This document shows, piece after piece, positions 1 through 61,196 of a stretch of 64,000 bases of DNA. The notes under the pieces are model-generated. The model saw only the letters and a program-made list of their open reading frames with translations. It was not told the DNA's origin and ran no database searches. The DNA lies in IMG/VR virus record IMGVR_UViG_3300023174_000033, positions 400,606 through 464,605 of that record. One strand, 5' to 3'. Made by a program: the position numbers and the translations under genes. Within the stretch, counting starts at the first letter, position 1; each line of letters begins with the position of its first letter.

Positions 1-2223
1 ATAAGTACCATCAGTAGAAAGTACCAATTTGAAACTTGTGAAGTCAGAAGATGCGTAAGAACCAGCAGTTTTTACAGTTATACCAGTTAAAAGAGCATTA
101 CCATCAGCAACATCTAATTGAACACTATAAATAGGTTGTGATGTTCCTTGAGCAGCACTTGAAACAGGTGTTGTGAAAGTGTGAGTGATTGTAGGTGTTG
201 GTACATTTACAGGAGCAAATGATACACCTTTAAAAAGAACCTGTGTTGAAGCAGGTGATGTAATGATTGGAGAACCAGAAGCTGTAATGATATCAGAACC
301 TGAACTTGTAATATTAGCAGTTACTGCTGAATTATCAGTAAACTTATAGATTTCATTAGCAGGTGATGTGGTTGATCCAAGACAGATATAGAGAACTCTA
401 TTTCCACCTACAACTTGAACACCAATACCGTGCACAGTTCTACCAGTTGGATTTGGAAGATTTCCTCTTTTTGTCCAAACACCACCAGTATTTGAGAACT
501 TAACAACACCTTGAGTTGCTGTTGCATTAGCATCAGCTACATACATAACATCAGGTGTTCCATTATCATCAACATCAGCGAAAACAAAACCTCTTGGGTC
601 AAGTAGTTCTGTATTTGATGTAGTTCCACTCAAAATTGTGTGTGTATTTCCTGTGGTTGTTGGAAGACCAGCACCAACTGTTGAAATACCAATGTTCACA
701 GATTGAGCACTTGAATAAAGTTGTGAGTTGTAAATAGCAGTTCCCCTAGTATTCACAGTAGTTGTTGAAACTTGGGTAGAAGTAGAAGCACCAAGTGCAA
801 CATATCTTGTACCACCACCAGTTCCAGCACCTCCTGTCCAGAATGCACTACCATCAACAGTAGCAGCTGAACGAATTGAGTTACCATCATAACCATCACT
901 AATACGAGTTGAAGTATTGATTGTACCATTTTGAGTAACCCTAGCAACAATCCTATTTGTTCCAGTAGCAGTACTTGAACTAATACCAATAACACCTGGG
1001 ATGTTATCATACCCACCAAAAGTAAGATATTGACCATCAGGTGAAAGGTTAAGGAAACCTTCGGTTGTAGAAGTACCACTCATAGTGAACTTCCTATTTG
1101 AACCACTTGTTACAAATGGCATTGGTACACTTTGTACTAAAGTACCTGTGGTGGTGTATTCATCAATGAACACAGGTGCTGAATTTGTTGATAAAGTTGT
1201 ACCACCAACTTCACCAACACGAAGAGTTAGGATATTACCAGCAGTGAAAGCAGAACCACCAGAATAAATCTGACCAGTTACAGCCCTTGAAATAGTTGGT
1301 GCTGGTGAAGATACAAAATCAACATTTCCAGTATATGTACCAACGGATGCTGATGTAGTAAGTTTAGCAAAAACTGTGGTTGCTGATACATTACCACCAG
1401 ATTGGTTTAGTGTTAAACTAGATGAAAAAGGACCAGTTGATGAAGTTGAGAATTCATATCCAGAAAGTGTACCCACGGTGATGTTGTTGGTTAGGTTATT
1501 ACCACTTACTGATACCGATTGAACTTCTGAACCAAGACCAGAATTTCCATAAAACTTAGCAAATGTTCCAGTAACAGTGACTGTAGGCACAGGTAAAAAA
1601 CCAGTTAGAGTAATATCATCAAGTCTAGTTGATGCAGTACCAGCTTTTAACCACCTAAGTTTTAGTCCATTGATTTGACCAGCAACTGGGATGGAGATTG
1701 CAGGTGATTGATACCAAGCAACAGCCGCAGTAGCTGTTTGAGAAAAGGTAAATGGAATATTTACCCAAGCAGTACCATTCCAATAATCTACTGTTAGTGT
1801 AGGTAATACTGTTGCACTTTCTTTTCTATATCCAAATTGGAGTGATAGAGAAGTGTAGGCAGATGCGTTTATACCCTCAATTGCAAAACCATACTGACCA
1901 CTAGTGGAAGTTAAGAATACATTACCACCAGCCGAAGCACCAGTGTAACCGGTTGAAGTACTGGTGTTTCTGATATCACCAGGAGTTGTTGCTCCACCAC
2001 TTGTCATAGTAAGAGCAGTGTTTGTGAAACCGTTAGCTGTTTCATGAGCAGCAATTGTAGTAGTTGCAGAAGGTGTACCCATGGTTTCTTGAGTAATAAC
2101 GGGGGATTGCCCAAACACAGTAGGGGCACAAAAAAGTCCTGAGATCAGGACAGCGCAGAAAAGGGACAATACGTTACTAAATCCTGTTCGGAAATTAGTA
2201 CAAAAATTGTAAAGGTGTGACAT
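1..2223 (-). CDS. Large secreted Ser/Thr/Gly-rich surface or adhesin-like protein, partial (3' end off the window edge)
   Basis: ATG at 2223 and an open frame down to position 1 (...KLVLSTDGTY). Signal-peptide-like N-terminus ending TVFG|QSP. Not in the ORF track because there is no stop in the window. Confidence 0.85.
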   Translation of the reverse strand, partial: MSHLYNFCTNFRTGFSNVLSLFCAVLISGLFCAPTVFGQSPVITQETMGTPSATTTIAAHETANGFTNTALTMTSGGATTPGDIRNTSTSTGYTGASAGGNVFLTSTSGQYGFAIEGINASAYTSLSLQFGYRKESATVLPTLTVDYWNGTAWVNIPFTFSQTATAAVAWYQSPAISIPVAGQINGLKLRWLKAGTASTRLDDITLTGFLPVPTVTVTGTFAKFYGNSGLGSEVQSVSVSGNNLTNNITVGTLSGYEFSTSSTGPFSSSLTLNQSGGNVSATTVFAKLTTSASVGTYTGNVDFVSSPAPTISRAVTGQIYSGGSAFTAGNILTLRVGEVGGTTLSTNSAPVFIDEYTTTGTLVQSVPMPFVTSGSNRKFTMSGTSTTEGFLNLSPDGQYLTFGGYDNIPGVIGISSSTATGTNRIVARVTQNGTINTSTRISDGYDGNSIRSAATVDGSAFWTGGAGTGGGTRYVALGASTSTQVSTTTVNTRGTAIYNSQLYSSAQSVNIGISTVGAGLPTTTGNTHTILSGTTSNTELLDPRGFVFADVDDNGTPDVMYVADANATATQGVVKFSNTGGVWTKRGNLPNPTGRTVHGIGVQVVGGNRVLYICLGSTTSPANEIYKFTDNSAVTANITSSGSDIITASGSPIITSPASTQVLFKGVSFAPVNVPTPTITHTFTTPVSSAAQGTSQPIYSVQLDVADGNALLTGITVKTAGSYASSDFTSFKLVLSTDGTY

Positions 2224-2435: not shown

Positions 2436-2714
2436 TTAAAGGCCTAATAATTTAGACTTTAGAACAGCTTGAAAAACATTTTTCACTTCGTACTTTTCTA
2501 CCGAATCCTTCCGATATTCTTTTTCAGAATTATTGAACTCATTAATCTCACCTATGTAAGCAACTACCATTTCTGAATTGTTATTTTCTACTTGGTTGTG
2601 ATAAGTGTTGTAACTCGACCAAGTTTTAATTCTTGAAATAGTATAACCCTCCTTAATAAGGAAATTTATCATTTCATCGTCTGTAAAATATAAATTAATC
2701 ATACTCATAATCAT
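2436..2714 (-). CDS. Hypothetical protein
   Basis: Track ORF 2436..2792. The start is moved to ATG 2714, which overlaps the upstream stop (ATGA). Confidence 0.65.
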   Translation of the reverse strand: MIMSMINLYFTDDEMINFLIKEGYTISRIKTWSSYNTYHNQVENNNSEMVVAYIGEINEFNNSEKEYRKDSVEKYEVKNVFQAVLKSKLLGL

Positions 2715-2848
2715 AGAAATAAAGATAATATAATGCCCAAAGAAGTTAAAAATACAATAGATATGGCCATTATTCCAATTAGCAATGAACATCCTGTAAC
2801 CGAAATCATTAATAAGTCACCAAGTAAATTTTTCCTCCCATCATTCAT
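2711..2848 (-). CDS. Small membrane protein (45 aa)
   Basis: MNDGRKNLLGDLLMISVTGCSLLIGIMAISIVFLTSLGIIISLFL. ATG lies 4 nt after a TATATTTG promoter element. Confidence 0.6.
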   Translation of the reverse strand: MNDGRKNLLGDLLMISVTGCSLLIGIMAISIVFLTSLGIILSLFL

Positions 2849-2852
2849 AATG

Positions 2853-2860
2853 CAAATATA
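2853..2860 (-). promoter_or_regulatory. Bacteroidetes -7 promoter element (TATATTTG)
   Basis: Matches TAnnTTTG, 4 nt upstream of ATG 2848. Confidence 0.65.
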
Positions 2861-2894
2861 GTTAAAGTTTTTACTCTAAAAAATAAAATAAAAT

Positions 2895-2927
2895 AAAAAA
2901 ACCCAACCGAGCTAAAGTTGGGTTTTT
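2895..2927 (-). terminator. Intrinsic terminator
   Basis: AAAAACCCAAC-N9-GTTGGGTTTTT inverted repeat with A/T tails. Confidence 0.8.
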
Positions 2928-2929
2928 AA

Positions 2930-3236
2930 TTAAAAGTTGAGAGAGATTTAATTAAGATTGCGGTCTCAACACCATCAATCTCTAACTCCGACTTTCCCAA
3001 ATCCGCAAATTTGGTTTGTCTACACCTGGATTTGTGTGTGATGCTTTAGGTGTTTCAGCATCAGACCCTACGGGTGATAGGTTTGGTGACCCACAACATC
3101 TACTAAATGTTGCTCCTTGTTTCATCCATATTAGTAGTTATGGACTTATCTGGACTTGTGTGATCTATATTTGGTTCCTAACATAAATCAAGTTAGATCC
3201 TTTCGGTTAGTCGGCTCTCGCAGCTCCCGTTGGACA
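2930..3236 (-). ncRNA. Candidate large structured non-coding RNA (~300 nt), family not recognised
   Basis: GC-enriched intergenic block between a full promoter and a terminator. At least 7 hairpins, a long-range CCGACT/AGTCGG helix, complementary loops CTACTAA/TTAGTAG and an ACACCT/AGGTGT pseudoknot. Confidence 0.7.
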
Positions 3237-3239
3237 ATA

Positions 3240-3270
3240 CAAAGGTAAGGCGATTTTTTAGGATTCCAAA
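3240..3270 (-). promoter_or_regulatory. Complete Bacteroidetes promoter (-33 TTTG, -7 TACCTTTG)
   Basis: TTTG at 3270-3267, 19-nt spacer, TACCTTTG at 3247-3240. No good ORF follows it. Confidence 0.75.
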
Positions 3271-3575
3271 ATATTTTTCAATTTTTTTTCTCTTAAATAA
3301 TAAATTAATTTTTCCTCAGCCCATAAGAATATCTTAAGTCTTGGAATTAAGTATTCATCACTCCATCTTGTATGTTTTATATAACCTCTCAACTCCTCAA
3401 TAGTTCTTTGAACCGAATCTAAATCATGGAAAAAATTTCCAGAAGAACCATAATACAAAAAAACTACCTTAGTATCATTTTCTAGTATCTTATGTCCATA
3501 AACCTCTGGTTCATATTCATCTATTATGAAATAATCATTCTTACAAAGGTCAGTAAATATTTTAAGCTGAGACAT
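3258..3575 (-). CDS. Hypothetical protein with C-terminal R-x-x-K-L-x-x-I-L tag
   Basis: Ends LREKKLKNILES. Confidence 0.75.
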   Translation of the reverse strand: MSQLKIFTDLCKNDYFIIDEYEPEVYGHKILENDTKVVFLYYGSSGNFFHDLDSVQRTIEELRGYIKHTRWSDEYLIPRLKIFLWAEEKLIYYLREKKLKNILES

Positions 3576-3591
3576 AGTAATATATACTTAT

Positions 3592-4116
3592 GTGAAATTC
3601 ATTAAAAGTTATAAAATTTTTGAGGCAGATGGTACTTTTATGTATGACCCATCAATTGAAAGTATATTACCAGAATATATTAAGATAATTAAGGGGAATC
3701 CAAAAAACCCACTTAGATTAGCTTATAAAAAAGGTATATCAAGACACCTAGGACCAGAAGTTCAAATACCATATGAAACGATGGATAAGAATGGTGGTAG
3801 GGAAAATCCAGACACTTTAGAATTTGACATATATTGGAACTACGATACAAATACTAGTAGTTTAAATATAAATGTCGAAGTAAATTATGGTGATTTAACT
3901 GCTTGTCAATTCTCCATAGAAGCTCCTAATAAAGTTGATGTGATAGTATATACCTCATTACACTCAAAAGATGACCCATCAAATACCGTGTTTGCAATAG
4001 ACGATGAAAGTTTGCAATCATTCTGTAATTACATCAACAAATGGGATCATGGTATCCATATAAATCGCGAAGATTTGAAGTTTATGGACAAGTACGATAA
4101 TTACTTACCTACTTGA
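3592..4116 (+). CDS. Hypothetical protein with MKxIKxF(E)-type N-terminal tag
   Basis: Starts MKFIKSYKIFEA (GTG). AATATATA at 3579-3586. Confidence 0.8.
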   Translation: MKFIKSYKIFEADGTFMYDPSIESILPEYIKIIKGNPKNPLRLAYKKGISRHLGPEVQIPYETMDKNGGRENPDTLEFDIYWNYDTNTSSLNINVEVNYGDLTACQFSIEAPNKVDVIVYTSLHSKDDPSNTVFAIDDESLQSFCNYINKWDHGIHINREDLKFMDKYDNYLPT

Positions 4117-5351
4117 TTTCTATCCCAAGTTTCAATTCCAAGAATGTGATACACTTTATCACTTGGATCCTCTACTAAATCCTTCCTAATGGCCAATTCC
4201 ATAAGTAACAATTCCATTTCGTCGTTCAAATCATGGGATTCCAAATCATAGTTCTCAAGTATCTTTATACCTATAAGTGGGTCTTTTTGAAACTTTGATA
4301 TAATCATATCAAATATTTCAATTTGTTTTGACAGAGACTTACCCCGCAAGTTCCTTGAGGAATTAGGTGCATGGTTTACCAACTTTGACAGTTTCTCTAT
4401 ATTAACGTTTTTTGGGTTTACGTCAAAATATCCATTGAAAGTTAAAGAAGAATCAATTATAGGGTGTAATTTGTACCAAGCTTTTTCATAGTCTTTCTTA
4501 TGAAGAATATTTCTCATATAATAAAGATAATCCTTTGAAAGATGAAGTCCACTTATATCATCTTTCTTGTATTTATCACTATCCACTTTTGATTCTAAAG
4601 ACCAGATATGATCACTTGACCCATAATTTGAGAGTAAGTAAACTTCCAAATCTTTTTCTCTAACCAATTTGAACCTTGATTTTAGGTCAGATTGATATTT
4701 TTTGAACATTTTAGCATATCTGTCTTTGAATCTATACTTATGACTATCGATAAAACACCTACTTCCAATAATAGTAGCAATCAAATCCAATTCTATCTCT
4801 GGTAAAGTAGCTTCCAAATCATACTTTTTCTTTACTAATCTGATAGCAGAGTGTGGTGGTGAACTTAAATTACAAAGACGCAACTCACCAGTTTTCAAAA
4901 ATTCCTCAAAATCTTTTGTCCAAATAAATTGATCAGTTTCAATATCGTATCCAAGTTGACAAGAGTTTATATCAAATGAATCTAGTACTAGAGATTTATC
5001 ATCCGTGGTGGAAAAATATTCAATATTGTTATAAATACCATCTACAGACACTTTCTCAATAGTGTAGTAACCCTTTTGTTGATATCCTATATTAAGACCG
5101 GTGTAATCTTCATAAACCCATTTTTCATTTCTAATAAAATGTTGCTTTGATTTTAACTCTCTATTTGTAAAATCCTTTTTGACACCAATCAGATGATAGA
5201 TATCTAAATCATTCACTGGTGCATTCTTACCAGATATTATATTCCATACCACATTTCCGATTGATCCTCCTGCTAGAAAACCAGATTTTGGAAGTTCCCA
5301 TTTTGATTTGATTTGGTCAAGTGCTTGACGAAAGATTTCTTGATATTTCAT
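4101..5351 (-). CDS. Divergent nucleotidyltransferase (poly(A) polymerase/CCA-enzyme head-like)
   Basis: AGGSI...NDLDIY and SFDINSCQLGYD resemble class II NTase head motifs. The RRD motif is not seen. Confidence 0.55.
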   Translation of the reverse strand: MKYQEIFRQALDQIKSKWELPKSGFLAGGSIGNVVWNIISGKNAPVNDLDIYHLIGVKKDFTNRELKSKQHFIRNEKWVYEDYTGLNIGYQQKGYYTIEKVSVDGIYNNIEYFSTTDDKSLVLDSFDINSCQLGYDIETDQFIWTKDFEEFLKTGELRLCNLSSPPHSAIRLVKKKYDLEATLPEIELDLIATIIGSRCFIDSHKYRFKDRYAKMFKKYQSDLKSRFKLVREKDLEVYLLSNYGSSDHIWSLESKVDSDKYKKDDISGLHLSKDYLYYMRNILHKKDYEKAWYKLHPIIDSSLTFNGYFDVNPKNVNIEKLSKLVNHAPNSSRNLRGKSLSKQIEIFDMIISKFQKDPLIGIKILENYDLESHDLNDEMELLLMELAIRKDLVEDPSDKVYHILGIETWDRNQVGK

Positions 5352-5366
5352 AATAATTTATTAGCA

Positions 5367-5374
5367 CAAAAATA
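5367..5374 (-). promoter_or_regulatory. Bacteroidetes -7 element (TATTTTTG)
   Basis: 15 nt upstream of ATG 5351. Confidence 0.5.
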
Positions 5375-5431
5375 TTAAATTTTTTTCAAAAAACAAAGAT
5401 TTTATATTTTAAATCTTATATATAATTGTAT

Positions 5432-5584
5432 ATGAAAAAGGAAAAAAAGTGGAGTAAGAATTGGAAATATTTAGGCATAGGTTTGTTATTTTTAGCTATA
5501 CCTGGTTCAACTTTTTTACTACCAGCGTTGTTGGCAAAAAAAATTCATGATAATAAGGATACAAACGATATTTTGGGCATATAA
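5432..5584 (+). CDS. Small single-TM protein (50 aa)
   Basis: MKKEKKWSKNWKYLGIGLLFLAIPGSTFLLPALLAKK..., below the track length cut-off. Confidence 0.55.
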   Translation: MKKEKKWSKNWKYLGIGLLFLAIPGSTFLLPALLAKKIHDNKDTNDILGI

Positions 5585-5606
5585 TGTTTAACTAATTATA
5601 CATTAC

Positions 5607-6704
5607 ATGGACAAAACATTTCTATTAACATTTATCATAGGTGGTTCTTTGGTTTATTTCAAACAATTTTTTTTGTTTTTATTTGAAAACATAAAAAATT
5701 TATTTATAACGAGCTTAAAAATTGAAGAATCTTCCTATTTTTTCTACTCATTCCAAAATTTTATACTTAATGAGTATAATAATAAGGTAAACAATTTCTA
5801 CTACAGGAACTTCTTTGATGATTGGATCGGTAAAGAATCAAACTTGAACTTATTTTACTCCTCGGGTTTTATCATAGTAAAATTTGAAGGTACAAAATTC
5901 CTAATTCTGAAAGCACAGAATAACATACAGAATTCTTTCAACCCATTCAAAGACACTAAACAATCTTTTCAAATTTATTGTTTCAATAAGAACAAATTGA
6001 ATAAATTAATTGAATATGTAGATAAATCATATGGCAGTAATTATATCAAATCTTATTATAACTTTAATGGTGAAGTAAAATGTTCAGGTAGAGTCATAAA
6101 TAAAACCTTTGAAAATATCTATCTTGATAATGGTATCGTTGAAGATTTGAAAAAAGATTTAGATCTTTTCGCATCATCAAAATCCATATACGATGAATAT
6201 GGAATTAGATATAAAAGAACTTATCTTTTCTATGGACCTCCTGGAACTGGTAAGTCATCTTTATCTCTGGGAATCTCCAATTATACAAAAAGGGATATAC
6301 TTTCAATCAATATGTCCAAAGATATCACAGATGCTAATTTGATAAGTTTAATTGCTAATAGACCTACAAAATCCATAGTATTATTTGAAGATATTGATTG
6401 CTTATTGGATGATATTAATAGAAATGAAGAGACAAAAGATAAAGAAGTGAAAATTTCACTTTCATGTATACTGAACATACTTGATGGAATATATACTCCT
6501 AACGATGTTATTTTCATAATAACAACGAATAATTTGGATAAAATTGACGATGCTATTAAAAGAAAAGGTAGAACCGATGTTTTATTGGAAGTCAAGAAAC
6601 CAAATAAATACTTTATGGATGAATTGAAAGATAGGTTCAATATAAAAACCGAAAAGGATATTGATAATATTTCTCAACTTTATGAGGAAATAATAAATAA
6701 TTAG
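5607..6704 (+). CDS. BCS1-like AAA+ ATPase with N-terminal TM segment
   Basis: Walker A GPPGTGKS, Walker B IVLFEDID, TTNN sensor, R-x-G-R finger, and the GIRYKRTYLFYGPPG context typical of BCS1. Confidence 0.85.
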   Translation: MDKTFLLTFIIGGSLVYFKQFFLFLFENIKNLFITSLKIEESSYFFYSFQNFILNEYNNKVNNFYYRNFFDDWIGKESNLNLFYSSGFIIVKFEGTKFLILKAQNNIQNSFNPFKDTKQSFQIYCFNKNKLNKLIEYVDKSYGSNYIKSYYNFNGEVKCSGRVINKTFENIYLDNGIVEDLKKDLDLFASSKSIYDEYGIRYKRTYLFYGPPGTGKSSLSLGISNYTKRDILSINMSKDITDANLISLIANRPTKSIVLFEDIDCLLDDINRNEETKDKEVKISLSCILNILDGIYTPNDVIFIITTNNLDKIDDAIKRKGRTDVLLEVKKPNKYFMDELKDRFNIKTEKDIDNISQLYEEIINN

Positions 6705-7481: not shown

Positions 7482-7979
7482 ATGTTCACACAAGATATCA
7501 CAACCGAAAAATCCAAAGTTATACTTTTGGTTGGCCCGCCTTTGAGTGGTAAGGATACTTTCTTGAAATCACAAGATATAACTGACTTTACAGTAATTAG
7601 TAGAGACGATATTCTTATGTCTTTACATGATAATTCCTCTTATTCAGAAGCTTTTGATAAAGTAGATCAAAAAGAAGTAGATAGATTATTGAATAAAAAA
7701 ATTCAAGATTCAATATCCAAGAAAGAGAATGTTATAATCAATATGACAAATCTTTCACCGAAATCAAGAAATAAGCATCTTTGCAAATTCGCAAACACTG
7801 ATTATTACAAAATTGCCATAGTCTTTCCAAAATTAGATTTGACCGATTATATAAATAGAAATGAGGGTAGGTCAATAAGTGAAAATAAGTTTATTCCTCT
7901 GCCTGTTATCAAAAATATGCTTGATAATTGGACTGATATTACAGATAGTGAAGGATTTGACACAATAATAAAACTTTAA
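7482..7979 (+). CDS. P-loop kinase, AAA_33/polynucleotide-kinase-like
   Basis: ILLVGPPLSGKDT, ISRDDI, NMTNLS...R and terminal EGFD, as in PNK kinase domains. Confidence 0.8.
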   Translation: MFTQDITTEKSKVILLVGPPLSGKDTFLKSQDITDFTVISRDDILMSLHDNSSYSEAFDKVDQKEVDRLLNKKIQDSISKKENVIINMTNLSPKSRNKHLCKFANTDYYKIAIVFPKLDLTDYINRNEGRSISENKFIPLPVIKNMLDNWTDITDSEGFDTIIKL

Positions 7980-7984
7980 AATAT

Positions 7985-8470
7985 ATGCCAAACTGGGTTA
8001 AAAACAAATTATTTATTCACGGACCATCTGATAAGGTTAAAAAATGCACACTTGATATCGCAAGTGATAGTGAGCACATTTCCTTTGAGAAAATCCTACC
8101 AAGACCAAAGGATATTGGTGATGGTTGGTACGATTGGAGTGTAGAAAATTGGGGTACTAAATGGGACGCCGCAGATACCTATGAAGATGATGAAGGATAC
8201 ATCTGTTTTGATACTGCTTGGTCCACTCCACATGAATTAATGGGTACACTTTCAGAGAGATATTCAGATTTACTTTTTGAGGTTAAGTTTGCGGACGAAG
8301 ATTTAGGTAATAATTGTGGAATGTATCAATTTAAAGATGGTGATGAAATTGAATTTATGTCCTATGGAATCGAGGAGGCTTGTGATATTTGGGGATATGA
8401 TATTGAGGAAATTTTCCCCGATATCAAACGAGACAGGCAAATCGACAGAATTATAGGTGATGACGAATGA
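7985..8470 (+). CDS. DUF1281/YubB-like ferredoxin-fold phage protein with C-terminal tag
   Basis: MPNW..N, WYDW..ENWGTKWD, FDTAWS.P, ADED.G.NCG. Ends KRDRQIDRII. Confidence 0.75.
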   Translation: MPNWVKNKLFIHGPSDKVKKCTLDIASDSEHISFEKILPRPKDIGDGWYDWSVENWGTKWDAADTYEDDEGYICFDTAWSTPHELMGTLSERYSDLLFEVKFADEDLGNNCGMYQFKDGDEIEFMSYGIEEACDIWGYDIEEIFPDIKRDRQIDRIIGDDE

Positions 8471-8976
8471 AGATTTTTGTCCTAACCCTTTTGTTTCTAT
8501 TATTCAGTACTTTTGGGTTTGGGCAAAGAGTAGGTACAGAAGTGCCAATTTTTGGAGTTGATAAGTTCAACAGTTTATCAAATGATGGAATTTTAACTTT
8601 TGAGATAGATTGTAGAATGGCGGATTGTATATCTTATGTACAAATAATCGATATTGAAAAAATAAAAAAAAAGAAAAGCATTTGGGATAAAATTTACGAT
8701 TGGTGGTGGTTTAAGATTGTCAAAAGATTTGATTTCCAAACTGCTAAAAAATTCAATAAAGAAATCACCCAAGATGAATATTTTCTAAAAGATTTAGATG
8801 ATGGTAAAGAACACATTTATATGAAATGTGAACTTATTACCTTAAAATCTTTATTTGGAAGAAAATCCTTGAAAAAAGGAATAAGAATAAACGTAATTTC
8901 CATGTCGGGAAAGAAAATATACACAAGGGACTTTACACTGGACAAGTCAAAATTGATAGAATCTTTAGAACAATAG
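8467..8976 (+). CDS. Putative secreted protein
   Basis: Signal peptide ending TFGFG|QR. Confidence 0.75.
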   Translation: MKIFVLTLLFLLFSTFGFGQRVGTEVPIFGVDKFNSLSNDGILTFEIDCRMADCISYVQIIDIEKIKKKKSIWDKIYDWWWFKIVKRFDFQTAKKFNKEITQDEYFLKDLDDGKEHIYMKCELITLKSLFGRKSLKKGIRINVISMSGKKIYTRDFTLDKSKLIESLEQ

Positions 8977-10463: not shown

Positions 10464-10976
10464 TTATTTATATCCTATTCCAAAGGCGACGACTTTGTCT
10501 TTTATAGATATTTGTTCTTGTTTGGAAAAATCCCATTCAATAACATAAGTGCCACTCTTACTAGCCAAAAAATCAAAGGTCTTTTTATTCTTGTCACCTT
10601 TGTTTGATAAGAATAGTTTTCCATCGGCATCATATAAATTTATAGTCACAGGATGGGTGAACCCTGTTGATAAATCAACAATTCTGTATGGCTCATTTGA
10701 ATAAAGATCAAATGTAGCTTTTACAATAGCTTTATCCTTAAATTTACTATAGTCCTGTGATACAGAAGATTCATACTTATACTCACCTAACTTTTTTATA
10801 CAATCATATTTTATAGTTCTACCACCATCAATTTGGTAAAAATCCATAAAAGAAGCAGAAATCTGAAATTCCTGATTCACAACATTCTCAAATTTGGGAT
10901 CACTTACCCTAAACTGACTGTAGATGGATGTAACAATTAGAGTCACCAAGGCCATCAAAAACGAATTGTTTTTCAT
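10464..10976 (-). CDS. Putative secreted protein
   Basis: Signal peptide ending SIYS|QF. Confidence 0.8.
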   Translation of the reverse strand: MKNNSFLMALVTLIVTSIYSQFRVSDPKFENVVNQEFQISASFMDFYQIDGGRTIKYDCIKKLGEYKYESSVSQDYSKFKDKAIVKATFDLYSNEPYRIVDLSTGFTHPVTINLYDADGKLFLSNKGDKNKKTFDFLASKSGTYVIEWDFSKQEQISIKDKVVAFGIGYK

Positions 10977-11109: not shown

Positions 11110-11550
11110 CTAAAAATTTTCCTTTAAACACTCCTCAACACCTTCGATAGTATCACAAACCCACATTCTTGAATTTACATTTCTTGAACCAGGTGTCTCT
11201 GGTATAAAACATTCAATCAACCATATATCATCTTCCAGTTTTTGAATAACCAGATCGCATTTAAAAGGTATATCTAAATCAAAAACATATTCCCTTCTGT
11301 AATCAGTTAAACCTTCTCTATGAGTCATTTCATACTTTTGTTTATCTACATGAGCTAATGGAAATCCTTTGGATCTAATATACTCCTCTACAAATCTATC
11401 TAAATTTTTATCTTCTTTTGGTGTTATATCATCTTGGTGACCCCAATATTCTAATTGTTCATAACTATGGGCAGTTAATCTATTATAGATCTTTCCTTCT
11501 AATTTATCATATGCTGATAGATTTTCATTAAATCTTTTTAAGTATTTCAT
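11110..11550 (-). CDS. MKYLK-tag, YxCD-family protein
   Basis: MKYLKRFNE...DIWLIE...WVCDTIEGVEECL. Confidence 0.85.
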   Translation of the reverse strand: MKYLKRFNENLSAYDKLEGKIYNRLTAHSYEQLEYWGHQDDITPKEDKNLDRFVEEYIRSKGFPLAHVDKQKYEMTHREGLTDYRREYVFDLDIPFKCDLVIQKLEDDIWLIECFIPETPGSRNVNSRMWVCDTIEGVEECLKENF

Positions 11551-11984
11551 AACCACTTATCAAGTAATATTTTAAGTGAATCAAATTCATCACATTCATA
11601 GTATTCAGAAAATCCATCAATTGTAGTTTCTTCATCAAAAATATCATCACCTTGAAATATACGAACATAATACCAATCATCCTTATTTTTGTAACAATCA
11701 AAACAAATTAAATTAGCATTTCCACCATTTGAATACATATAAATAACAAAATTATCTGGAAGTTCTTTTTTATCCGAAGTGAATCTGTTGTAGATAAAAC
11801 TAGAACGATTATTATATTCCACATCTTCTATTTTTCTACTCTTATCAAATACAGATTCTAAATATAAAAGTTCTTTTTCAGTAAAATAATCTCTTGTCTT
11901 TTTTTCTGGATAAAAATCTTCATAGGAAATATTTTTAGGTTCAGCAGGTCCAAACATATTTTCAAATAACTTTAGATATTTCAT
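11547..11984 (-). CDS. MKYLK-tag, YxCD-family protein
   Basis: MKYLKLFENMFGPAEPK...DWYYV...YYECDEFDSL. Confidence 0.85.
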   Translation of the reverse strand: MKYLKLFENMFGPAEPKNISYEDFYPEKKTRDYFTEKELLYLESVFDKSRKIEDVEYNNRSSFIYNRFTSDKKELPDNFVIYMYSNGGNANLICFDCYKNKDDWYYVRIFQGDDIFDEETTIDGFSEYYECDEFDSLKILLDKWL

Positions 11985-12430
11985 TTAAGTTTAGCTTCTT
12001 TTTTTAAAAGATTTAATAAACAATCAAACCCATCACATTCATAATATTCTTCATAACCTTCAAAATATCCTTCATCACTATCCCAATTATCTTGATAAAA
12101 ACTTACTAAAAACCATTCATCTTTACATTTTTGGACATGAACTTCAAATGGATATGGATTGCCTTCATCATAAGTTGGTAGATAAAAAGTTAAATAAGTA
12201 AGACCAATTCTGTAATAATCAACTTTTTCACTTAATCCAAGATTATCCCATTCTTCTTCTTCCATATGGCAACGGTCACTATCTTCCATTAAATTAACAA
12301 GGGTTTCCATTTCAGATTTACTGAAAAACTCCTTACCCAAAGATTTTAAAAGTCTTGACCATTCACTATTGGTGATTTTTTTTGGTTCAGCAGCTCCAAA
12401 TATGCTTTCAAATCTTTTTAAGTATTTCAT
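11981..12430 (-). CDS. MKYLK-tag, YxCD-family protein
   Basis: MKYLKRFESIFGAAEPK...EWFLV...YYECDGFDCL. Confidence 0.85.
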   Translation of the reverse strand: MKYLKRFESIFGAAEPKKITNSEWSRLLKSLGKEFFSKSEMETLVNLMEDSDRCHMEEEEWDNLGLSEKVDYYRIGLTYLTFYLPTYDEGNPYPFEVHVQKCKDEWFLVSFYQDNWDSDEGYFEGYEEYYECDGFDCLLNLLKKEAKLK

Positions 12431-12864
12431 AGGTTTAAAAGTTCTTCTAATTTTTCTATTAAGTCTTCAAATGTGCTACATTCGAACTTTCTAACAACCT
12501 CATCACCACCTTTTTCATCAAATTCAGCATAACCCAAATAAAACCAATCAGGATCATCCACCTTATCCCTTTTTGAAATTTCAATTGCTTTTACAATATA
12601 TTTCCCCCTTGGGTAGTTACTGGTTTTCTCTACTTTTCTAAAATCATTAATAGTATAATGGGTCTTATCATAATTTAATTCCAATAACCTATCATATTCT
12701 AAACTCAATTCATACCTTCTTATAAAATCAGACATCTGTTCTATTTCAGAAGTGGTGAATTCTGATAAAGTAACTGACCTTGAATTCACCCTTCTCCACC
12801 AATCATCGAAGTCGAGTTCAGTTGAACCAGAATAAAAGTTTTCAAATCTTTTTAAGTATTTCAT
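12427..12864 (-). CDS. MKYLK-tag, YxCD-family protein
   Basis: MKYLKRFENF...DWFYL...FECSTFEDL. Confidence 0.85.
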   Translation of the reverse strand: MKYLKRFENFYSGSTELDFDDWWRRVNSRSVTLSEFTTSEIEQMSDFIRRYELSLEYDRLLELNYDKTHYTINDFRKVEKTSNYPRGKYIVKAIEISKRDKVDDPDWFYLGYAEFDEKGGDEVVRKFECSTFEDLIEKLEELLNL

Positions 12865-12867
12865 AGT

Positions 12868-13293
12868 TTATTGTATTTTTAATAAGTTCAAAACAGAATC
12901 AAACCCATCACATTCATAATATTCTTCATACTCATAGTAAACTTCCCCTTCTTCATCTTGATACTCATCTTGATAAAAACTAACCATAAACCATTCATCT
13001 GGACACTTTTGTATATGAACCTCTATTGGTAGAGGATTAACATCACCACCTCCAATATAATAAGTTAGATAAGTAAGACCAATAACAAAATTATCTAACT
13101 TTTCACTCCAACCAAGATTATCCCATACTACTTGTTCTCGACCACTACTTTCCATTAAGTCAATCAAAGTTTTATGCTCTGATTTGGTAAAGAAATCTTT
13201 TCCAGATTTAATTTTAATTGACCATTGACGTTCACTTATCTGTTTAGCTTCAGCAGGTCCAAACATAGATTCAAATAATTTCAGATATTTCAT
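12868..13293 (-). CDS. MKYLK-tag, YxCD-family protein (close paralog of 11981..12430)
   Basis: Start reassigned to MKYLKLFES at 13293. AATATATA at 13305-13298. Confidence 0.85.
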   Translation of the reverse strand: MKYLKLFESMFGPAEAKQISERQWSIKIKSGKDFFTKSEHKTLIDLMESSGREQVVWDNLGWSEKLDNFVIGLTYLTYYIGGGDVNPLPIEVHIQKCPDEWFMVSFYQDEYQDEEGEVYYEYEEYYECDGFDSVLNLLKIQ

Positions 13294-13357
13294 TAAGTAT
13301 ATATTAAAATTTTTTATATTTTGCAAAACATTAGAAATAACAAGAATATAAGGTGAT

Positions 13358-20792: not shown

Positions 20793-23657
20793 TTAATAGT
20801 TGTAGAACAAAAATAAATTTATTGCTGGATTATTTACACCAGTAGCACCTATTGGACCTTGATTTCCTTGTATACCAGTTGGTCCTTGAACTCCTTGTGG
20901 TCCACCAGCAGGACCAGTAGCCCCTTGTGGCCCAATAATACCATCTATTTTAGAAATTGTAATCCTTGAGTTTGGTTCATTTTGTAACCATCCAGAACCG
21001 TTTATTGTAACAGTACCAGCTTGGTCAGAATTTAAATAAGCTCTTATATCAAAGTAATCATTTTGAGCAAGTGTTATGATGAAAGAAAACATCACAGGTT
21101 GTCCATAACTATCACTCAATAAAATACTATTTGACGAATACCTATTATTTGAGTTTGTACTTTGACCATTTTTTACACCATATACCTGTAATGATGTTGC
21201 AAAATCATTAGCACCAAAAGTGGAAATAAAACCAGAAACAGCTACTGTGATAGTAGATGTGTTTATGTTTGTAAATGAATAAGAAGCTCCACTATAAGTT
21301 ACACCCAGAGATCCAATAGTATTTGATGTATCTATGTTTGGCCAAGGTATTATCCCCTCTGTATTGGGTGATATTGATGTGGCATTTGTTTGGTCTCCAA
21401 ATCTACCTATACTTGCAAAACTTGTTCCTGCAGTTGGACCTTGAACACCTATAGCTCCTTGTGGTCCAGTATTTCCTTGTAGACCAGTTACACCTTGTGG
21501 ACCAGTTACACCTTGGACTCCTTGAAAACCTTGAGGACCTTGCAGACCTTGAAATCCTTGTGGACCAGTTGTACCAGTTCCAGCACTAACTATAAATAAT
21601 GCTAAGTTATTATTATTAGAAAAGTTATGGGTTGCACTTAATAAACTAACTTTCACCTCAACATAACCAGTTTGTATAGAAGCATCCGTAGTCACTACCC
21701 ATTTTTGATAATTATTTGAATTTCCTTGGTCCTGTAAGATTAATATATCATTAACTTTTATCAAAGCCAATATAAAATCTATATCTATATTATCATTTGT
21801 TATATGTGATATATTTAGTTGTGTTGCTGATGTCTGTGTAGCATTATCCCATAGAATATATTGACTACCAGGGTTACCACTTGTTAATGTTGTTTTGGCC
21901 TTATATAAGAAAGTATTGGTTGAACCACCAGCTGGACCTTGGTCACCTTGTGGACCTTGGTCTCCTTGAAATCCTTGTGGTCCATCAAAACCCTGAGGTC
22001 CCATATCTCCTTGTGGACCTTGGTCTCCTTGAAATCCTTGTGGTCCATCAAAACCTTGCGGACCATCAAATCCTTGCGGACCATCAAATCCTTGCGGACC
22101 ATCAAATCCTTGCGGACCATCAAATCCTTGCGGACCTGGATCACCCTGTGGACCTGGATCACCCTGTGGACCTGGATCACCCTGTGGACCTGGATCGCCC
22201 TGTGGACCTGGATCGCCCTGTGGACCTGGATCGCCCTGTGGACCTGGATCGCCCTGTGGACCTGGATCACCCTGTGGACCTGTGTTACCTTGAACACCCT
22301 GGAATCCTTGTGGACCAGTATTACCTTGAAAACCCTGAGGTCCAGTAAATCCTTGTGAACCAGTAAGTCCTTGATTCCCCTGTGGACCTTGTAAACCTTG
22401 GAATCCTTGGAATCCTTGTGGACCTGTAAATCCCTGAGGTCCTTCTATACCAATAGACAATGGTACAAAAATCATATCGTGTCCATTAGTAAATGAATAA
22501 CCACCATTAACATAAGTAACTGGTATTGAAACATAACTATTAGGTGTAATACTAGTTGTCCCACTAACTGTCCATTTTTGATAGTTATTTGAGTTATTCT
22601 CATCTTGGAGTATTAAACTATCACCAGTTTTAATCAATGCTAAAAATACATCTATATCTACACCATCTCTTGTTAAGTGAGAAACATATAATATAGTTGA
22701 GCTTATTTGCGTGGCATTATTCCACACAATCTGTGAGTTATTTGGTGGAGGTGATTGTGTATTTGTTCTAGCATTATATTTGTAATAAGATACTGATACA
22801 CCATCAGCACCAGCAGCACCAGTTCCACCTTGAATACCTTGTACACCTTGAAATCCTTGTGGGCCTGTATAACCTTGAAATCCTTGTACACCTTGAAATC
22901 CTTGTGGGCCTGTATAACCTTGAAATCCTTGTGGACCAGTAGTTCCCTGACTACCAGTTGAACCTTGATTTCCAGTAGTTCCCTGACTACCAGTTGAACC
23001 TTGAGGACCAGTATTACCTTGAGCACCAGTACCACCAAAAGCACCCCCTTGAATACCTTGAAATCCTTGAGGACCAGTATTACCTTGGTTTCCAGTACCT
23101 CCACCAAGTGGTCCCTGAGCACCAGTATTTCCCTGAGGACCAGTATTACCTTGATTACCAGTACCACCACCTAAACCACCTTGAACACCCTGTGGTCCAG
23201 TATAACCTTGAAATCCTTGTGGACCTTGGATTCCTTGTACACCAGTAAAACCTTGGGGTCCCTCTGTGCCGGCACCTGTTATGACAAGACCACTGGTGGT
23301 GGTAGCAAAAATCAGTGTATAATCATCAGTACTATTATGTGTTAAAGTATATGTTGTTATTTCTTGGAAACTACCATCCAATACTTGAACTACCGGATAA
23401 TATCCAAAACTATGTGTTATTGTTAATGTATCAGAAGAACTAAAAGTGCTATTTAAAATGGAGGGAACCCCACCAGATCCTTGTGGACCTTGTTGACCTT
23501 GTGATCCAGTCTCACCATTAGCCCCTATAACACCATTTCCCCCAGAAATTTCCAAAAGATTTCCATCACCATCATAAAATTGACCATCGATATATTGGAC
23601 CATCACTGGCAATTTTTCGAAGGTTAATTGAAATATTTTATTTGGTAAATCTGCCAA
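20793..23657 (-). CDS. Collagen-like fibre protein with two repeated globular inserts
   Basis: Long (Gly-X-Y)n blocks separated by two similar domains (WNNATQ...NNYQKW and WDNATQ...NNYQKW). TTG start, AATATATA at 23682-23675. Confidence 0.9.
21930..22290 (-). repeat. 18-nt coding tandem repeats (GPQGDP x ~8, GPQGFD x ~5)
   Basis: Units such as TGTGGACCTGGATC(A/G)CCC at ~22131-22280. Confidence 0.9.
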
Positions 23658-26587: not shown

Positions 26588-26661
26588 AGACAGGTGGCGC
26601 AATCGGTGAGCGCAGGACTCTTATACGGTCAAGGTTGTGGGTTCAAGTCCCATCCTGTCAA
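26588..26661 (+). tRNA. tRNA-Ile(UAU)
   Basis: D arm GCGC/GCGC, anticodon loop CT-TAT-AC, T arm GTGGG-TTCAAGT-CCCAT. The 1:72 pair is an A:A mismatch. No encoded CCA. Confidence 0.8.
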
Positions 26662-26718
26662 CAAATAAAATCTGTAAACAAAGAGGGCTAATAATATAAA
26701 ATATTAAGATATATAAAA

Positions 26719-26792
26719 GGGCTCTTAACTCAGTAGGTCAGAGTGTCGGTCTCATAAACCGGAAGTCGTTGGTTCAAACCCAACAGGGCCCA
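26719..26792 (+). tRNA. tRNA with CAU anticodon (Met or lysidine-type Ile2)
   Basis: Acceptor GGGCTCT/AGGGCCC, loop CT-CAT-AA, T arm GTTGG-TTCAAAC-CCAAC. No encoded CCA. Confidence 0.9.
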
Positions 26793-26825
26793 CACTTTTT
26801 TATTAAAAAAAACTAATTAACTAAC

Positions 26826-60725: not shown

Positions 60726-60757
60726 TTTGGAATCTGAGTAATATATTACTACCTTTG
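60726..60757 (+). promoter_or_regulatory. Complete Bacteroidetes promoter
   Basis: TTTG at 60726-60729, 20-nt spacer, TACCTTTG at 60750-60757. ATG follows 4 nt later. Confidence 0.75.
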
Positions 60758-60761
60758 TATT

Positions 60762-60992
60762 ATGAAAACGAAACAACAATCGGCTTACTTTATAACCAAG
60801 AGAGTATTCTCAAGAAATTCGTTTGGCCCTATACCACAAGAGAAAATCTTCTACTTCACCCACTATCGTAGAGAGTTTCAAACCCTTTCAAAGAAACAAC
60901 AGGACCGTTTTGTTAAGGATCTGAAAAAGTTCTTTGGAGGAGACTACTTTATGGTAGAGCACTGGGAAAGAAAATTAAATATAAAGCTCTAA
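60762..60992 (+). CDS. Small basic hypothetical protein
   Basis: Has its own promoter. Confidence 0.7.
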   Translation: MKTKQQSAYFITKRVFSRNSFGPIPQEKIFYFTHYRREFQTLSKKQQDRFVKDLKKFFGGDYFMVEHWERKLNIKL

Positions 60993-61196
60993 CGTGTAGG
61001 TTTGATAAACCCACAAGCGTCTCACAAAGTTGTCTTTGTATGTGAGGACAAAGGTTAGAGAAAAAGAATATTTGGGTGTTGTGAATTAACATCAAAAAAG
61101 GATACAACTCCGACTTATCATCGGATTGTGGAAACTCCTTCATAAACCATCCAGAGGGTTCTCAATAACTTATTTATTTTTGATAATATAATTTTT

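Follow-up and report, generated by a model that had tools for sequence, protein, structure and literature searches.

Comparative sequence analysis points to a compact, previously undescribed structured RNA gene in freshwater huge phages

ROOL and GOLLD, two families of large phage RNAs, build unprecedented RNA-only assemblies and usually lie beside tRNA genes or tRNA islands in phages or prophages; ROOL is roughly 600 nt long. The phi29-type pRNA, found in small protein-primed Bacillus phages, is shorter (~120–174 nt), and its loops pair between molecules over 4 nt, building a ring. To our knowledge, very few families of large, tertiary-structured phage RNAs have been described, and none comes from the huge phages of Bacteroidota. 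GOLLD was first seen in lake metagenomes and is often longer than 800 nt, and in ROOL a covarying loop–loop pairing, initially interpreted as a tertiary contact, turned out to be quaternary, a kissing loop between molecules (bioRxiv 10.1101/2024.12.08.627333). Here we describe an RNA of ~340 nt encoded on the minus strand, around positions 2930–3236, of a 64,000-nucleotide stretch (the window) of the 464,605-bp viral contig IMGVR_UViG_3300023174_000033 (Ga0214921_10000006). An initial annotation, made from the letters of the window, had proposed a tertiary-folded phage non-coding RNA (ncRNA) with its own promoter and terminator at this position, and ~30 related loci with compensatory changes support that proposal. 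We consider it very probable that the element represents a genuine family of structured, stand-alone ncRNAs; the fuller reading, in which it is an ncRNA gene of a freshwater huge-phage clade infecting Bacteroidota and likely acts in trans as a compact particle, is probable.

ROOL and GOLLD are the closest in kind. Like the RNA described here, they are structured RNAs that phages encode as stand-alone genes, have neither a known function nor a known protein partner, and are rich in pseudoknots and loop–loop contacts visible by covariation. The present RNA, which belongs to huge phages of Bacteroidota, is nevertheless unrelated to either in sequence and structure, has half their size or less, and does not have tRNA genes as neighbours: the window holds just two, tRNA-Ile(TAT) and tRNA-Met(CAT) at 26588–26793 (plus strand), ~23 kb off, and none was called in the homolog flanks. 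With phi29-type pRNA it shares phage encoding, its own promoter and two complementary, covarying loops in the same molecule, but there is no Rfam pRNA match and no link to packaging genes, and the phage has a 465-kb genome. Its size and its linear string of H-type pseudoknots and hairpins recall tmRNA, which is known in large phages; unlike in tmRNA, its 5′ and 3′ ends do not combine into a tRNA-like domain, there is neither a T-arm nor a conserved tag frame, and ARAGORN found no tmRNA in the window. The purine and lysine riboswitch aptamers likewise lock neighbouring helices by a kiss between terminal loops (L2–L3) and carry a terminator downstream, but this RNA is much larger, has more modules and its own promoter, and shows no tie to a conserved downstream gene.

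Searches of the window with cmscan against all 4227 Rfam 15 families returned, at the gathering threshold, two tRNAs only. Relaxing the threshold to E ≤ 10 on positions 2600–3600 gave only weak, terminator-driven matches to unrelated small RNAs (sRNAs), and at E ≤ 1 seven homologous loci gave nothing; among the models without a match were RNase P, T-box, pRNA, ROOL, GOLLD, OLE, raiA, tmRNA, riboswitches and ribozymes. Because there is no Rfam match, the claim of the initial annotation that the family was unrecognised stands, and the RNA is new as a previously undescribed family for which no relative was detected; the viral structured-RNA catalogue of Fremin et al. 2023, with its 10,006 unnamed candidates, lay outside this comparison. 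Three local resemblances to known motifs were discarded: a sarcin–ricin-like CGAGAG, whose tetraloop varies in loci L057 and L036; a T-box-like GGUGGU...ACCGC, which has no model match and does not involve the terminator; and an RNase P-like GGAAAGUC, present only in the window copy.

Homologous contigs were collected from JGI metagenomes and from ENA, NCBI and Logan assemblies, giving ~40 loci anchored on relatives of the 105-aa protein encoded directly 5′ of the RNA (3258–3575, minus strand; 42 relatives, 63–100% identity). A profile search placed the RNA directly 3′ of the 105-aa gene in every sufficiently long locus, with 22 distinct full-length copies and ~8 more cut by contig ends. The structural counts below refer to 20 aligned sequences (alignment A5), which are close relatives (78–95% identical) with signs of recombination. 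In 14 loci with both features complete, the mean pairwise nucleotide identity of the RNA is 87.0%, compared with 79.2% for the 105-aa open reading frame (ORF). The related contigs originate from lake metagenomes, and the known range of the RNA is one phage clade. In IMG/VR, a 20-mer shared without variation by the 20 aligned full-length copies occurs only in the contig of the window itself (L024), and the 22 matches of an exact 16-mer scan were all chance apart from that contig; a gapped pattern of the pseudoknot PK2 (described below) found three chance matches only in GTDB genomes, and BLAST of the RNA (distant mode) or of its 20-kb flank (near mode) found no match among GenBank phages. Distant huge phages that carry a Gad2-like gene with 34–41% identity to that of the window (L003, L004 and L028–L034) have no copy of the RNA, and no 105-aa or 174-aa gene nearby. 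A block of ~470 nt in one of them (L003:10862–11338; IMGVR_UViG_3300027996_002186, a 483-kb phage) is intergenic, ORF-free and G+C-enriched and has a TAnnTTTG box; it was rejected as a relative, as it is not alignable, folds with z = −1.3 and has no Rfam match. No second copy of the RNA, as a diversity-generating-retroelement template or a paralog, was found within the window.

The structure was built by hand from covariation and from per-domain folding of divergent sequences, and was then scored on A5. The resulting model contains 117 pairs in 18 helices, with 98.1% of cells paired. Double-sided changes occur at 21 pairs, a number reached by none of 500 shuffles, and sliding the partners by 1–3 columns as a control left 31–43% of cells paired and 5–9 double-sided pairs; the compensatory pairs go beyond what phylogeny and composition account for. 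When state changes were counted on the maximum-likelihood tree, key pairs showed 2–8 independent changes: two at 12–35 in P1a (pairs are numbered by A5 columns), three at 45–63 in P2, five at 103–115 in P3, three at 185–202 and five at 187–201 in P6, and three to eight for the pairs of P7. Consistently with a structured molecule, the 342-nt transcript of the window copy has a minimum free energy (MFE) of −98.5 kcal/mol, compared with −75.0 ± 5.6 kcal/mol for 100 dinucleotide shuffles, none of which folds as well (z = −4.21). The RNAalifold consensus differs in a long-range helix (46–51/258–263), a helix at 165–168/182–185 and a short 3′ hairpin, all of which were set aside because they conflict with better-supported pairs.

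In this model the RNA consists of seven modules in a row over ~340 nt, all coordinates below being on the minus strand: a 5′ stem-loop with a tetraloop, a hairpin whose loop is a candidate for pseudoknot pairing, two hairpins kissing by 6 bp, two mini-hairpins, an H-type pseudoknot, a hairpin with a variable stem and an invariant loop, and a long 3′ hairpin that also has an invariant loop. Domain 1 (3197–3235; P1, P1a, P1b and P1c) begins at the inferred 5′ end, contains an invariant 20-mer (3227–3208) and is capped by a GAGA tetraloop (3219–3216), replaced by UUAG in L057 and by AAAA in L036. Its fold is the MFE structure in five divergent sequences, and pair 12–35 is A-U in 12 sequences and G-C in 8. 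The CC-GAAA-GG tetraloop drawn in the initial annotation conflicts with this covarying pair; its CC pairs instead with the 5′ GG/AG, and its GG with the CC of the first 5′ helix. Domain 2 (3162–3196) comprises hairpin P2 (3196–3178), the CTAAC/GTTAG helix noticed earlier, whose closing pair 45–63 is C-G in 11 and G-C in 9 sequences, and the candidate pseudoknot PK1. In Domain 3 (3093–3154), P3a/P3 (3154–3114; TCCATA/TATGGA, three pairs of P3 with double-sided changes) is followed directly by P4 (3113–3093), and the two loops form the kissing loop KL1.

Domain 4 (3065–3092) consists of two short invariant hairpins, P5 (GGGU/ACCU, with a loop variable in sequence and length) and P5a (ACCC/GGGU); all stem columns are invariant and both are candidate pairings. 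An alternative hairpin (162–167/173–179) is also 100% paired, and its pair 166–174, linked with column 198, is A-U in 10 sequences and G-C in 10. Pairing of GGGU (152–155) with the CACCC loop as a further pseudoknot was dropped as it appears sterically implausible. Domain 5 (3022–3063) is the H-type pseudoknot PK2, whose first stem P6 (UGAUGCU/AGCAUCA, 3063–3039) includes pair 185–202, A-U in 12 and G-C in 8 sequences. Domain 6 (2990–3020) is the P7a/P7 hairpin, corresponding to the CCAAAT/ATTTGG helix of the initial annotation, in which a highly variable stem with double-sided changes in five of six P7 pairs carries a loop with an invariant UGCGGA (3007–3002). Domain 7 (2933–2989) is a long irregular hairpin (P10, P9, a 3 × 3 internal loop and P8′) with the invariant loop CCGCAA (2963–2958). 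When the domain is folded in isolation, this hairpin is the MFE structure in each of six divergent sequences, and pair 281–290 of its apical stem is G-C in 19 sequences and A-U in L068.

The helices that had been read from the window copy could be judged against the homologs. All of the quoted motifs are present where they had been placed on the plus strand, and eight of the nine pairs are exact reverse complements, ACAACAT/ATGTTGC forming six Watson–Crick pairs and one G·U. Five helices (CTAAC/GTTAG, TCCATA/TATGGA, ACAACAT/ATGTTGC, TGATGCT/AGCATCA and CCAAAT/ATTTGG) are supported by the homologs as drawn, and six of the seven local helices persist in every homolog. The helix CCGACU/AGUCGG, thought to close most of the molecule, exists in the window copy but has only 79% of its cells paired across the homologs, with pair 26–258 holding in 7 of 20 sequences and 30–254 in 11 of 20. 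Its 3′ bases lie instead in P7a, a local 3-bp stem under P7, where column 254 is compatible in 19 of 20 sequences (pair 227–254: U·G, U-A or C-G). For AGAUUG/CAAUCU the pairing itself is possible, but the register with the proximal CAAUCU copy is disfavoured by the comparison: Domain 7 uses the distal copy, and L052 has the complementary GUUAAAAG/CUUUUAAC in place of the two P9 strands, which abolishes the earlier register.

The best-supported contact between modules is KL1, in which CUACUAA (3137–3131) pairs with UUAGUAG (3106–3100) across the loops of the abutting P3 and P4 hairpins. The third pair, 108–142, is A-U in 16 sequences and G-C in 4 and is never mismatched; the G-C sequences are scattered over the tree, so that at least three changes are needed. 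The seventh pair is broken in three sequences, whereas the other six are kept in 20 of 20. The double-sided A-U/G-C covariation constitutes strong evidence that the two loops pair, as had been proposed from their exact complementarity. The pseudoknot suggested between ACACCU and AGGUGU is also retained: the second stem of PK2 joins the P6 loop (3053–3048) to 3027–3022 and is invariant except for one mismatch in L052, being conserved rather than covarying. The third loop is 11 nt long and A/C-rich, and loop lengths of 3, 0–2 and 11 nt would correspond to classical H-type geometry. Two further contacts are candidates. In PK1, the P2 loop GAUUUAU (3189–3183) faces AUAGAUC (3168–3162), and the pairing is 100% kept in the 20 sequences; the changes within it are wobble-compatible only (eight cells, none double-sided), while the linker around it otherwise varies freely, and an alternative partner exists at columns 94–100. 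In KL2, UGCGG (3007–3003) in the P7 loop is complementary to CCGCA (2963–2959) in the loop of the 3′ hairpin, both invariant in 20 of 20 sequences. A 5-nt loop match of this kind is expected fairly often by chance, and it is the invariance that argues for KL2 as a possible second kissing loop.

The structured block is enclosed by signals for its own transcription. It is G+C-enriched (41.0% over 2930–3236, compared with 31.9% for the window and 24–30% for the flanks), as the initial annotation had remarked, and the promoter and terminator reported there are both present. The promoter (3240–3270, minus strand) matches what we take to be the Bacteroidota consensus, TTTG at −33 and TAnnTTTG at −7, ~19 nt apart: its −33 TTTG (3270–3267) lies inside the final codons of the 105-aa gene and is followed, after a 19-nt spacer, by the −7 box TACCTTTG (3247–3240). 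The −7 box is invariant in 11 of 11 sequences of alignment A4, the spacer being variable, and the promoter pattern is enriched in the window, with 12 occurrences where 4.9 are expected, a count that none of 100 shuffles reaches. Since the same TACCTTTGTATT that is found in this promoter also precedes a leaderless ATG elsewhere in the window (60750–60764), the RNA likely starts near G3235, the base with which helix P1 begins. The intrinsic terminator (2895–2927, minus strand), located by a pattern scan, is an 11–12-bp hairpin (12 pairs, 2927–2897) followed by at least seven U; it is 99.5% paired in the 20 sequences and includes two compensated, double-sided changes. Both sequence hallmarks of a stand-alone ncRNA gene, a Bacteroidota promoter and an intrinsic terminator, are present, and together with the start site they suggest a discrete, separate transcript.

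The second occurrence of TACCTTTGTATT belongs to a 76-aa ORF, whose ATG follows it directly so that the mRNA is leaderless. The promoter of this ORF (60726–60764, plus strand) and that of the RNA (3270–3232, minus strand) have TTTGGAATC...TACCTTTGTATT in common, which may define a phage promoter class. After the 76-aa ORF lies a further ORF-free, G+C-richer block of ~200 nt (60993–61196, plus strand; folding z = −1.8, no Rfam match), which could be another small structured element, or nothing.

That the element might not be an RNA gene at all, but a short or recoded protein-coding gene, the remnant of a decayed gene, or a site conserved at the DNA level independently of folding, appears scarcely credible. 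Automatic gene callers do place ORFs of 66–137 aa over the RNA in several contigs, but these disagree in strand, frame and length, and no frame on either strand stays open across the homologs. The 47-aa minus-strand ORF, which the initial annotation had found unconvincing, is not conserved (four homologs lack its start, and it varies between 10 and 71 aa in length), and instead of codon-type conservation without compensatory changes, the homologs show such changes in abundance. Variable columns are spread over the three codon positions as 20/22/23 in the RNA, with no periodicity, compared with 51/34/79 in the neighbouring 105-aa ORF, and indels of 1–2 nt are tolerated. In the window copy each of the six frames contains at least two TAA codons, and therefore recoding of TAG or TGA cannot rescue an ORF; the window has no suppressor tRNA and no sign of stop-codon recoding. 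The 21 double-sided compensatory pairs would in any case be unexpected for a DNA site or a pseudogene. A role in cis, as a riboswitch or attenuator leader for small membrane-protein genes or as a 3′ untranslated region (UTR) stabilizing the 105-aa mRNA, is improbable, though less strongly so. In its favour, the terminator ends ~47 nt before the next same-strand ORF of the window, the mRNA of the 105-aa gene, which lacks a terminator, must finish within the element or beyond it, and the duplicated CAAUCU permits two switch-like pairings of GAGAUUG. The alternative pairing is impossible in L052, however, the switch candidates do not overlap the terminator stem, no riboswitch or leader family matches, and the element is served by an invariant promoter of its own. 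The small ORF downstream has a separate TAnnTTTG box ~33 nt past the terminator in 14 of 20 loci, spaced for a leaderless mRNA, and in the other six the downstream genes are different or on the other strand with the RNA unchanged, so that no regulated downstream gene is conserved; for these reasons the element does not appear to be the leader of downstream genes. Catalysis, with the invariant nucleotides forming the active site of a self-cleaving or RNA-processing ribozyme, is quite improbable and ranks below a cis role. It would suit the dense tertiary architecture, the long invariant unpaired stretches and a conservation exceeding what most protein-binding sRNAs need, but no Rfam ribozyme matches even at E ≤ 10, the hammerhead resemblance of CUGAUG...GAAAC, rejected as a candidate, is lost in half of the homologs, and the context suggests no substrate.

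Among possible functions, action in trans as a partner-binding particle is our tentative choice, placed ahead of the other roles though below an even chance. Transcription from about G3235, inside helix P1, to the terminator would release a discrete and probably stable particle, and this compact RNA would be recognised in trans by its shape and by invariant exposed elements, namely the loops UGCGGA and CCGCAA together with the uppermost 20 nt of the 5′ stem-loop. A protein or a cellular RNA machine may be the partner, for which the RNA would serve as scaffold or decoy. Antisense pairing and a ligand-sensing leader role are less likely; complementarity to the RNA within the 64-kb window never extends beyond 13 nt and is not above chance. 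Ranked next, and unlikely, is self-assembly, with KL1 and/or KL2 forming between molecules to give dimers, rings or cages, as in phi29 pRNA, ROOL and GOLLD. Linker-less abutting hairpins with complementary loops occur twice (P3/P4, and P7 with the 3′ hairpin), the arms of KL2 (~12 and ~25 stacked layers) would make an intramolecular kiss awkward without a sharp bend, and in ROOL a tertiary reading became a quaternary one (bioRxiv 10.1101/2024.12.08.627333). The arms of KL1, on the other hand, would fit intramolecular closure, as the 7 bp of P4 plus a kiss of 6–7 bp approximate the ~14 layers of P3a, internal loop and P3, and KL2, a match of a length often met by chance, shows no covariation. 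The specific version in which KL1 and KL2 link copies head-to-tail into a closed ring or cage, for example sequestering a host factor, is a little less likely again. Several points weigh against a stand-alone particle acting in trans. Because the 20 sequences are closely related and bear signs of recombination, part of the covariation amounts to few events, and that of 166–174 is a single event on the tree; PK1, the second stem of PK2 and KL2 show invariance or wobble changes without double compensation. The promoter, the start site and the discrete transcript are likewise deduced from sequence, and transcripts of the upstream gene must run through the element, which could double as the 3′ UTR of that gene. 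Finally, no partner was found: the 105-aa protein is mildly acidic and has no recognisable RNA-binding fold, and its adjacency may be plain synteny.

That protein was considered as an RNA-binding partner and rejected. Its AlphaFold2 (AF2) model is confident (predicted local distance difference test score, pLDDT, 82) but has no fold match in the PDB and no recognisable RNA-binding fold, and the protein is mildly acidic (median isoelectric point 6.3). It is preceded by a 174-aa ORF on the strand opposite to the RNA, then by a Gad2-like nucleotidyltransferase gene (4101–5351, minus strand; PF26128 on its homologs, PHROG nucleotidyltransferase) and by an AAA ATPase gene (5607–6704, plus strand), the nearest neighbour identifiable by Pfam besides the Gad2-like gene. 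The nucleotidyltransferase-like and AAA ATPase genes are conserved close by on the 5′ side of the RNA module. Pfam Gad2 (Gabija anti-defence 2) is matched by homologs of the nucleotidyltransferase-like protein, the window protein itself having no Pfam match in the local library, and the region upstream of the RNA may be an anti-defence neighbourhood. Pfam and PHROGs searches of the neighbours found no reverse transcriptase, Cas, Ro60 or RNA-processing gene within ~25 kb.

On the 3′ side the RNA is followed by two small ORFs and then by a gene running off the end of the window. One of the small ORFs (2711–2848, minus strand), present in 14 of 20 loci, encodes a hydrophobic protein of 45–48 aa in the window and homologs; its ATG lies 4–5 nt past its own −7 box, and it is apparently translated from a leaderless mRNA. 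The gene at the window end (1–2223, minus strand) encodes a very large secreted protein, whose full-length homologs (1675–1742 aa; L055, L060, L066 and others) possess a C-terminal sorting domain of type IX secretion; a weak match to the same domain is seen in a second, small ORF (10464–10976, minus strand). This secretion tail on a phage protein and the Bacteroidota-type promoter are the two features that point to Bacteroidota as the host. Elsewhere in the window, a 954-aa protein contains ~20 collagen triple-helix repeats (20793–23657, minus strand), and five consecutive ORFs of near-equal length (145–152 aa) without a family match occupy 11110–13326 (minus strand). Two of the related contigs have genes worth noting: L057 (Ga0502761_0000826), from a huge phage, encodes a 409-aa protein with a RuBisCO large-subunit Pfam match (7583–8812), adjoining methyltransferase and nucleotidyl-transferase genes, and L058 (Ga0492780_0000102) carries, a few hundred bases 3′ of the RNA, a 633-aa intein-interrupted gene with FMN-reductase matches and with intein-splicing and LAGLIDADG domains (4763–6664).

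The RNA adds a compact example of ~340 nt to the large tertiary-structured phage RNAs, with a kissing loop backed by covariation, one or two H-type pseudoknots and long invariant segments that would be exposed. It is new as a family without a detectable relative, its building blocks being ordinary RNA motifs, and it is small enough for cryo-EM, crystallography and mutate-and-rescue tests. If it does self-assemble, it would be a much smaller and unrelated counterpart of ROOL and GOLLD in the huge phages of Bacteroidota. Because the RNA is more conserved than the neighbouring proteins, a selected function during infection of freshwater Bacteroidota is implied.

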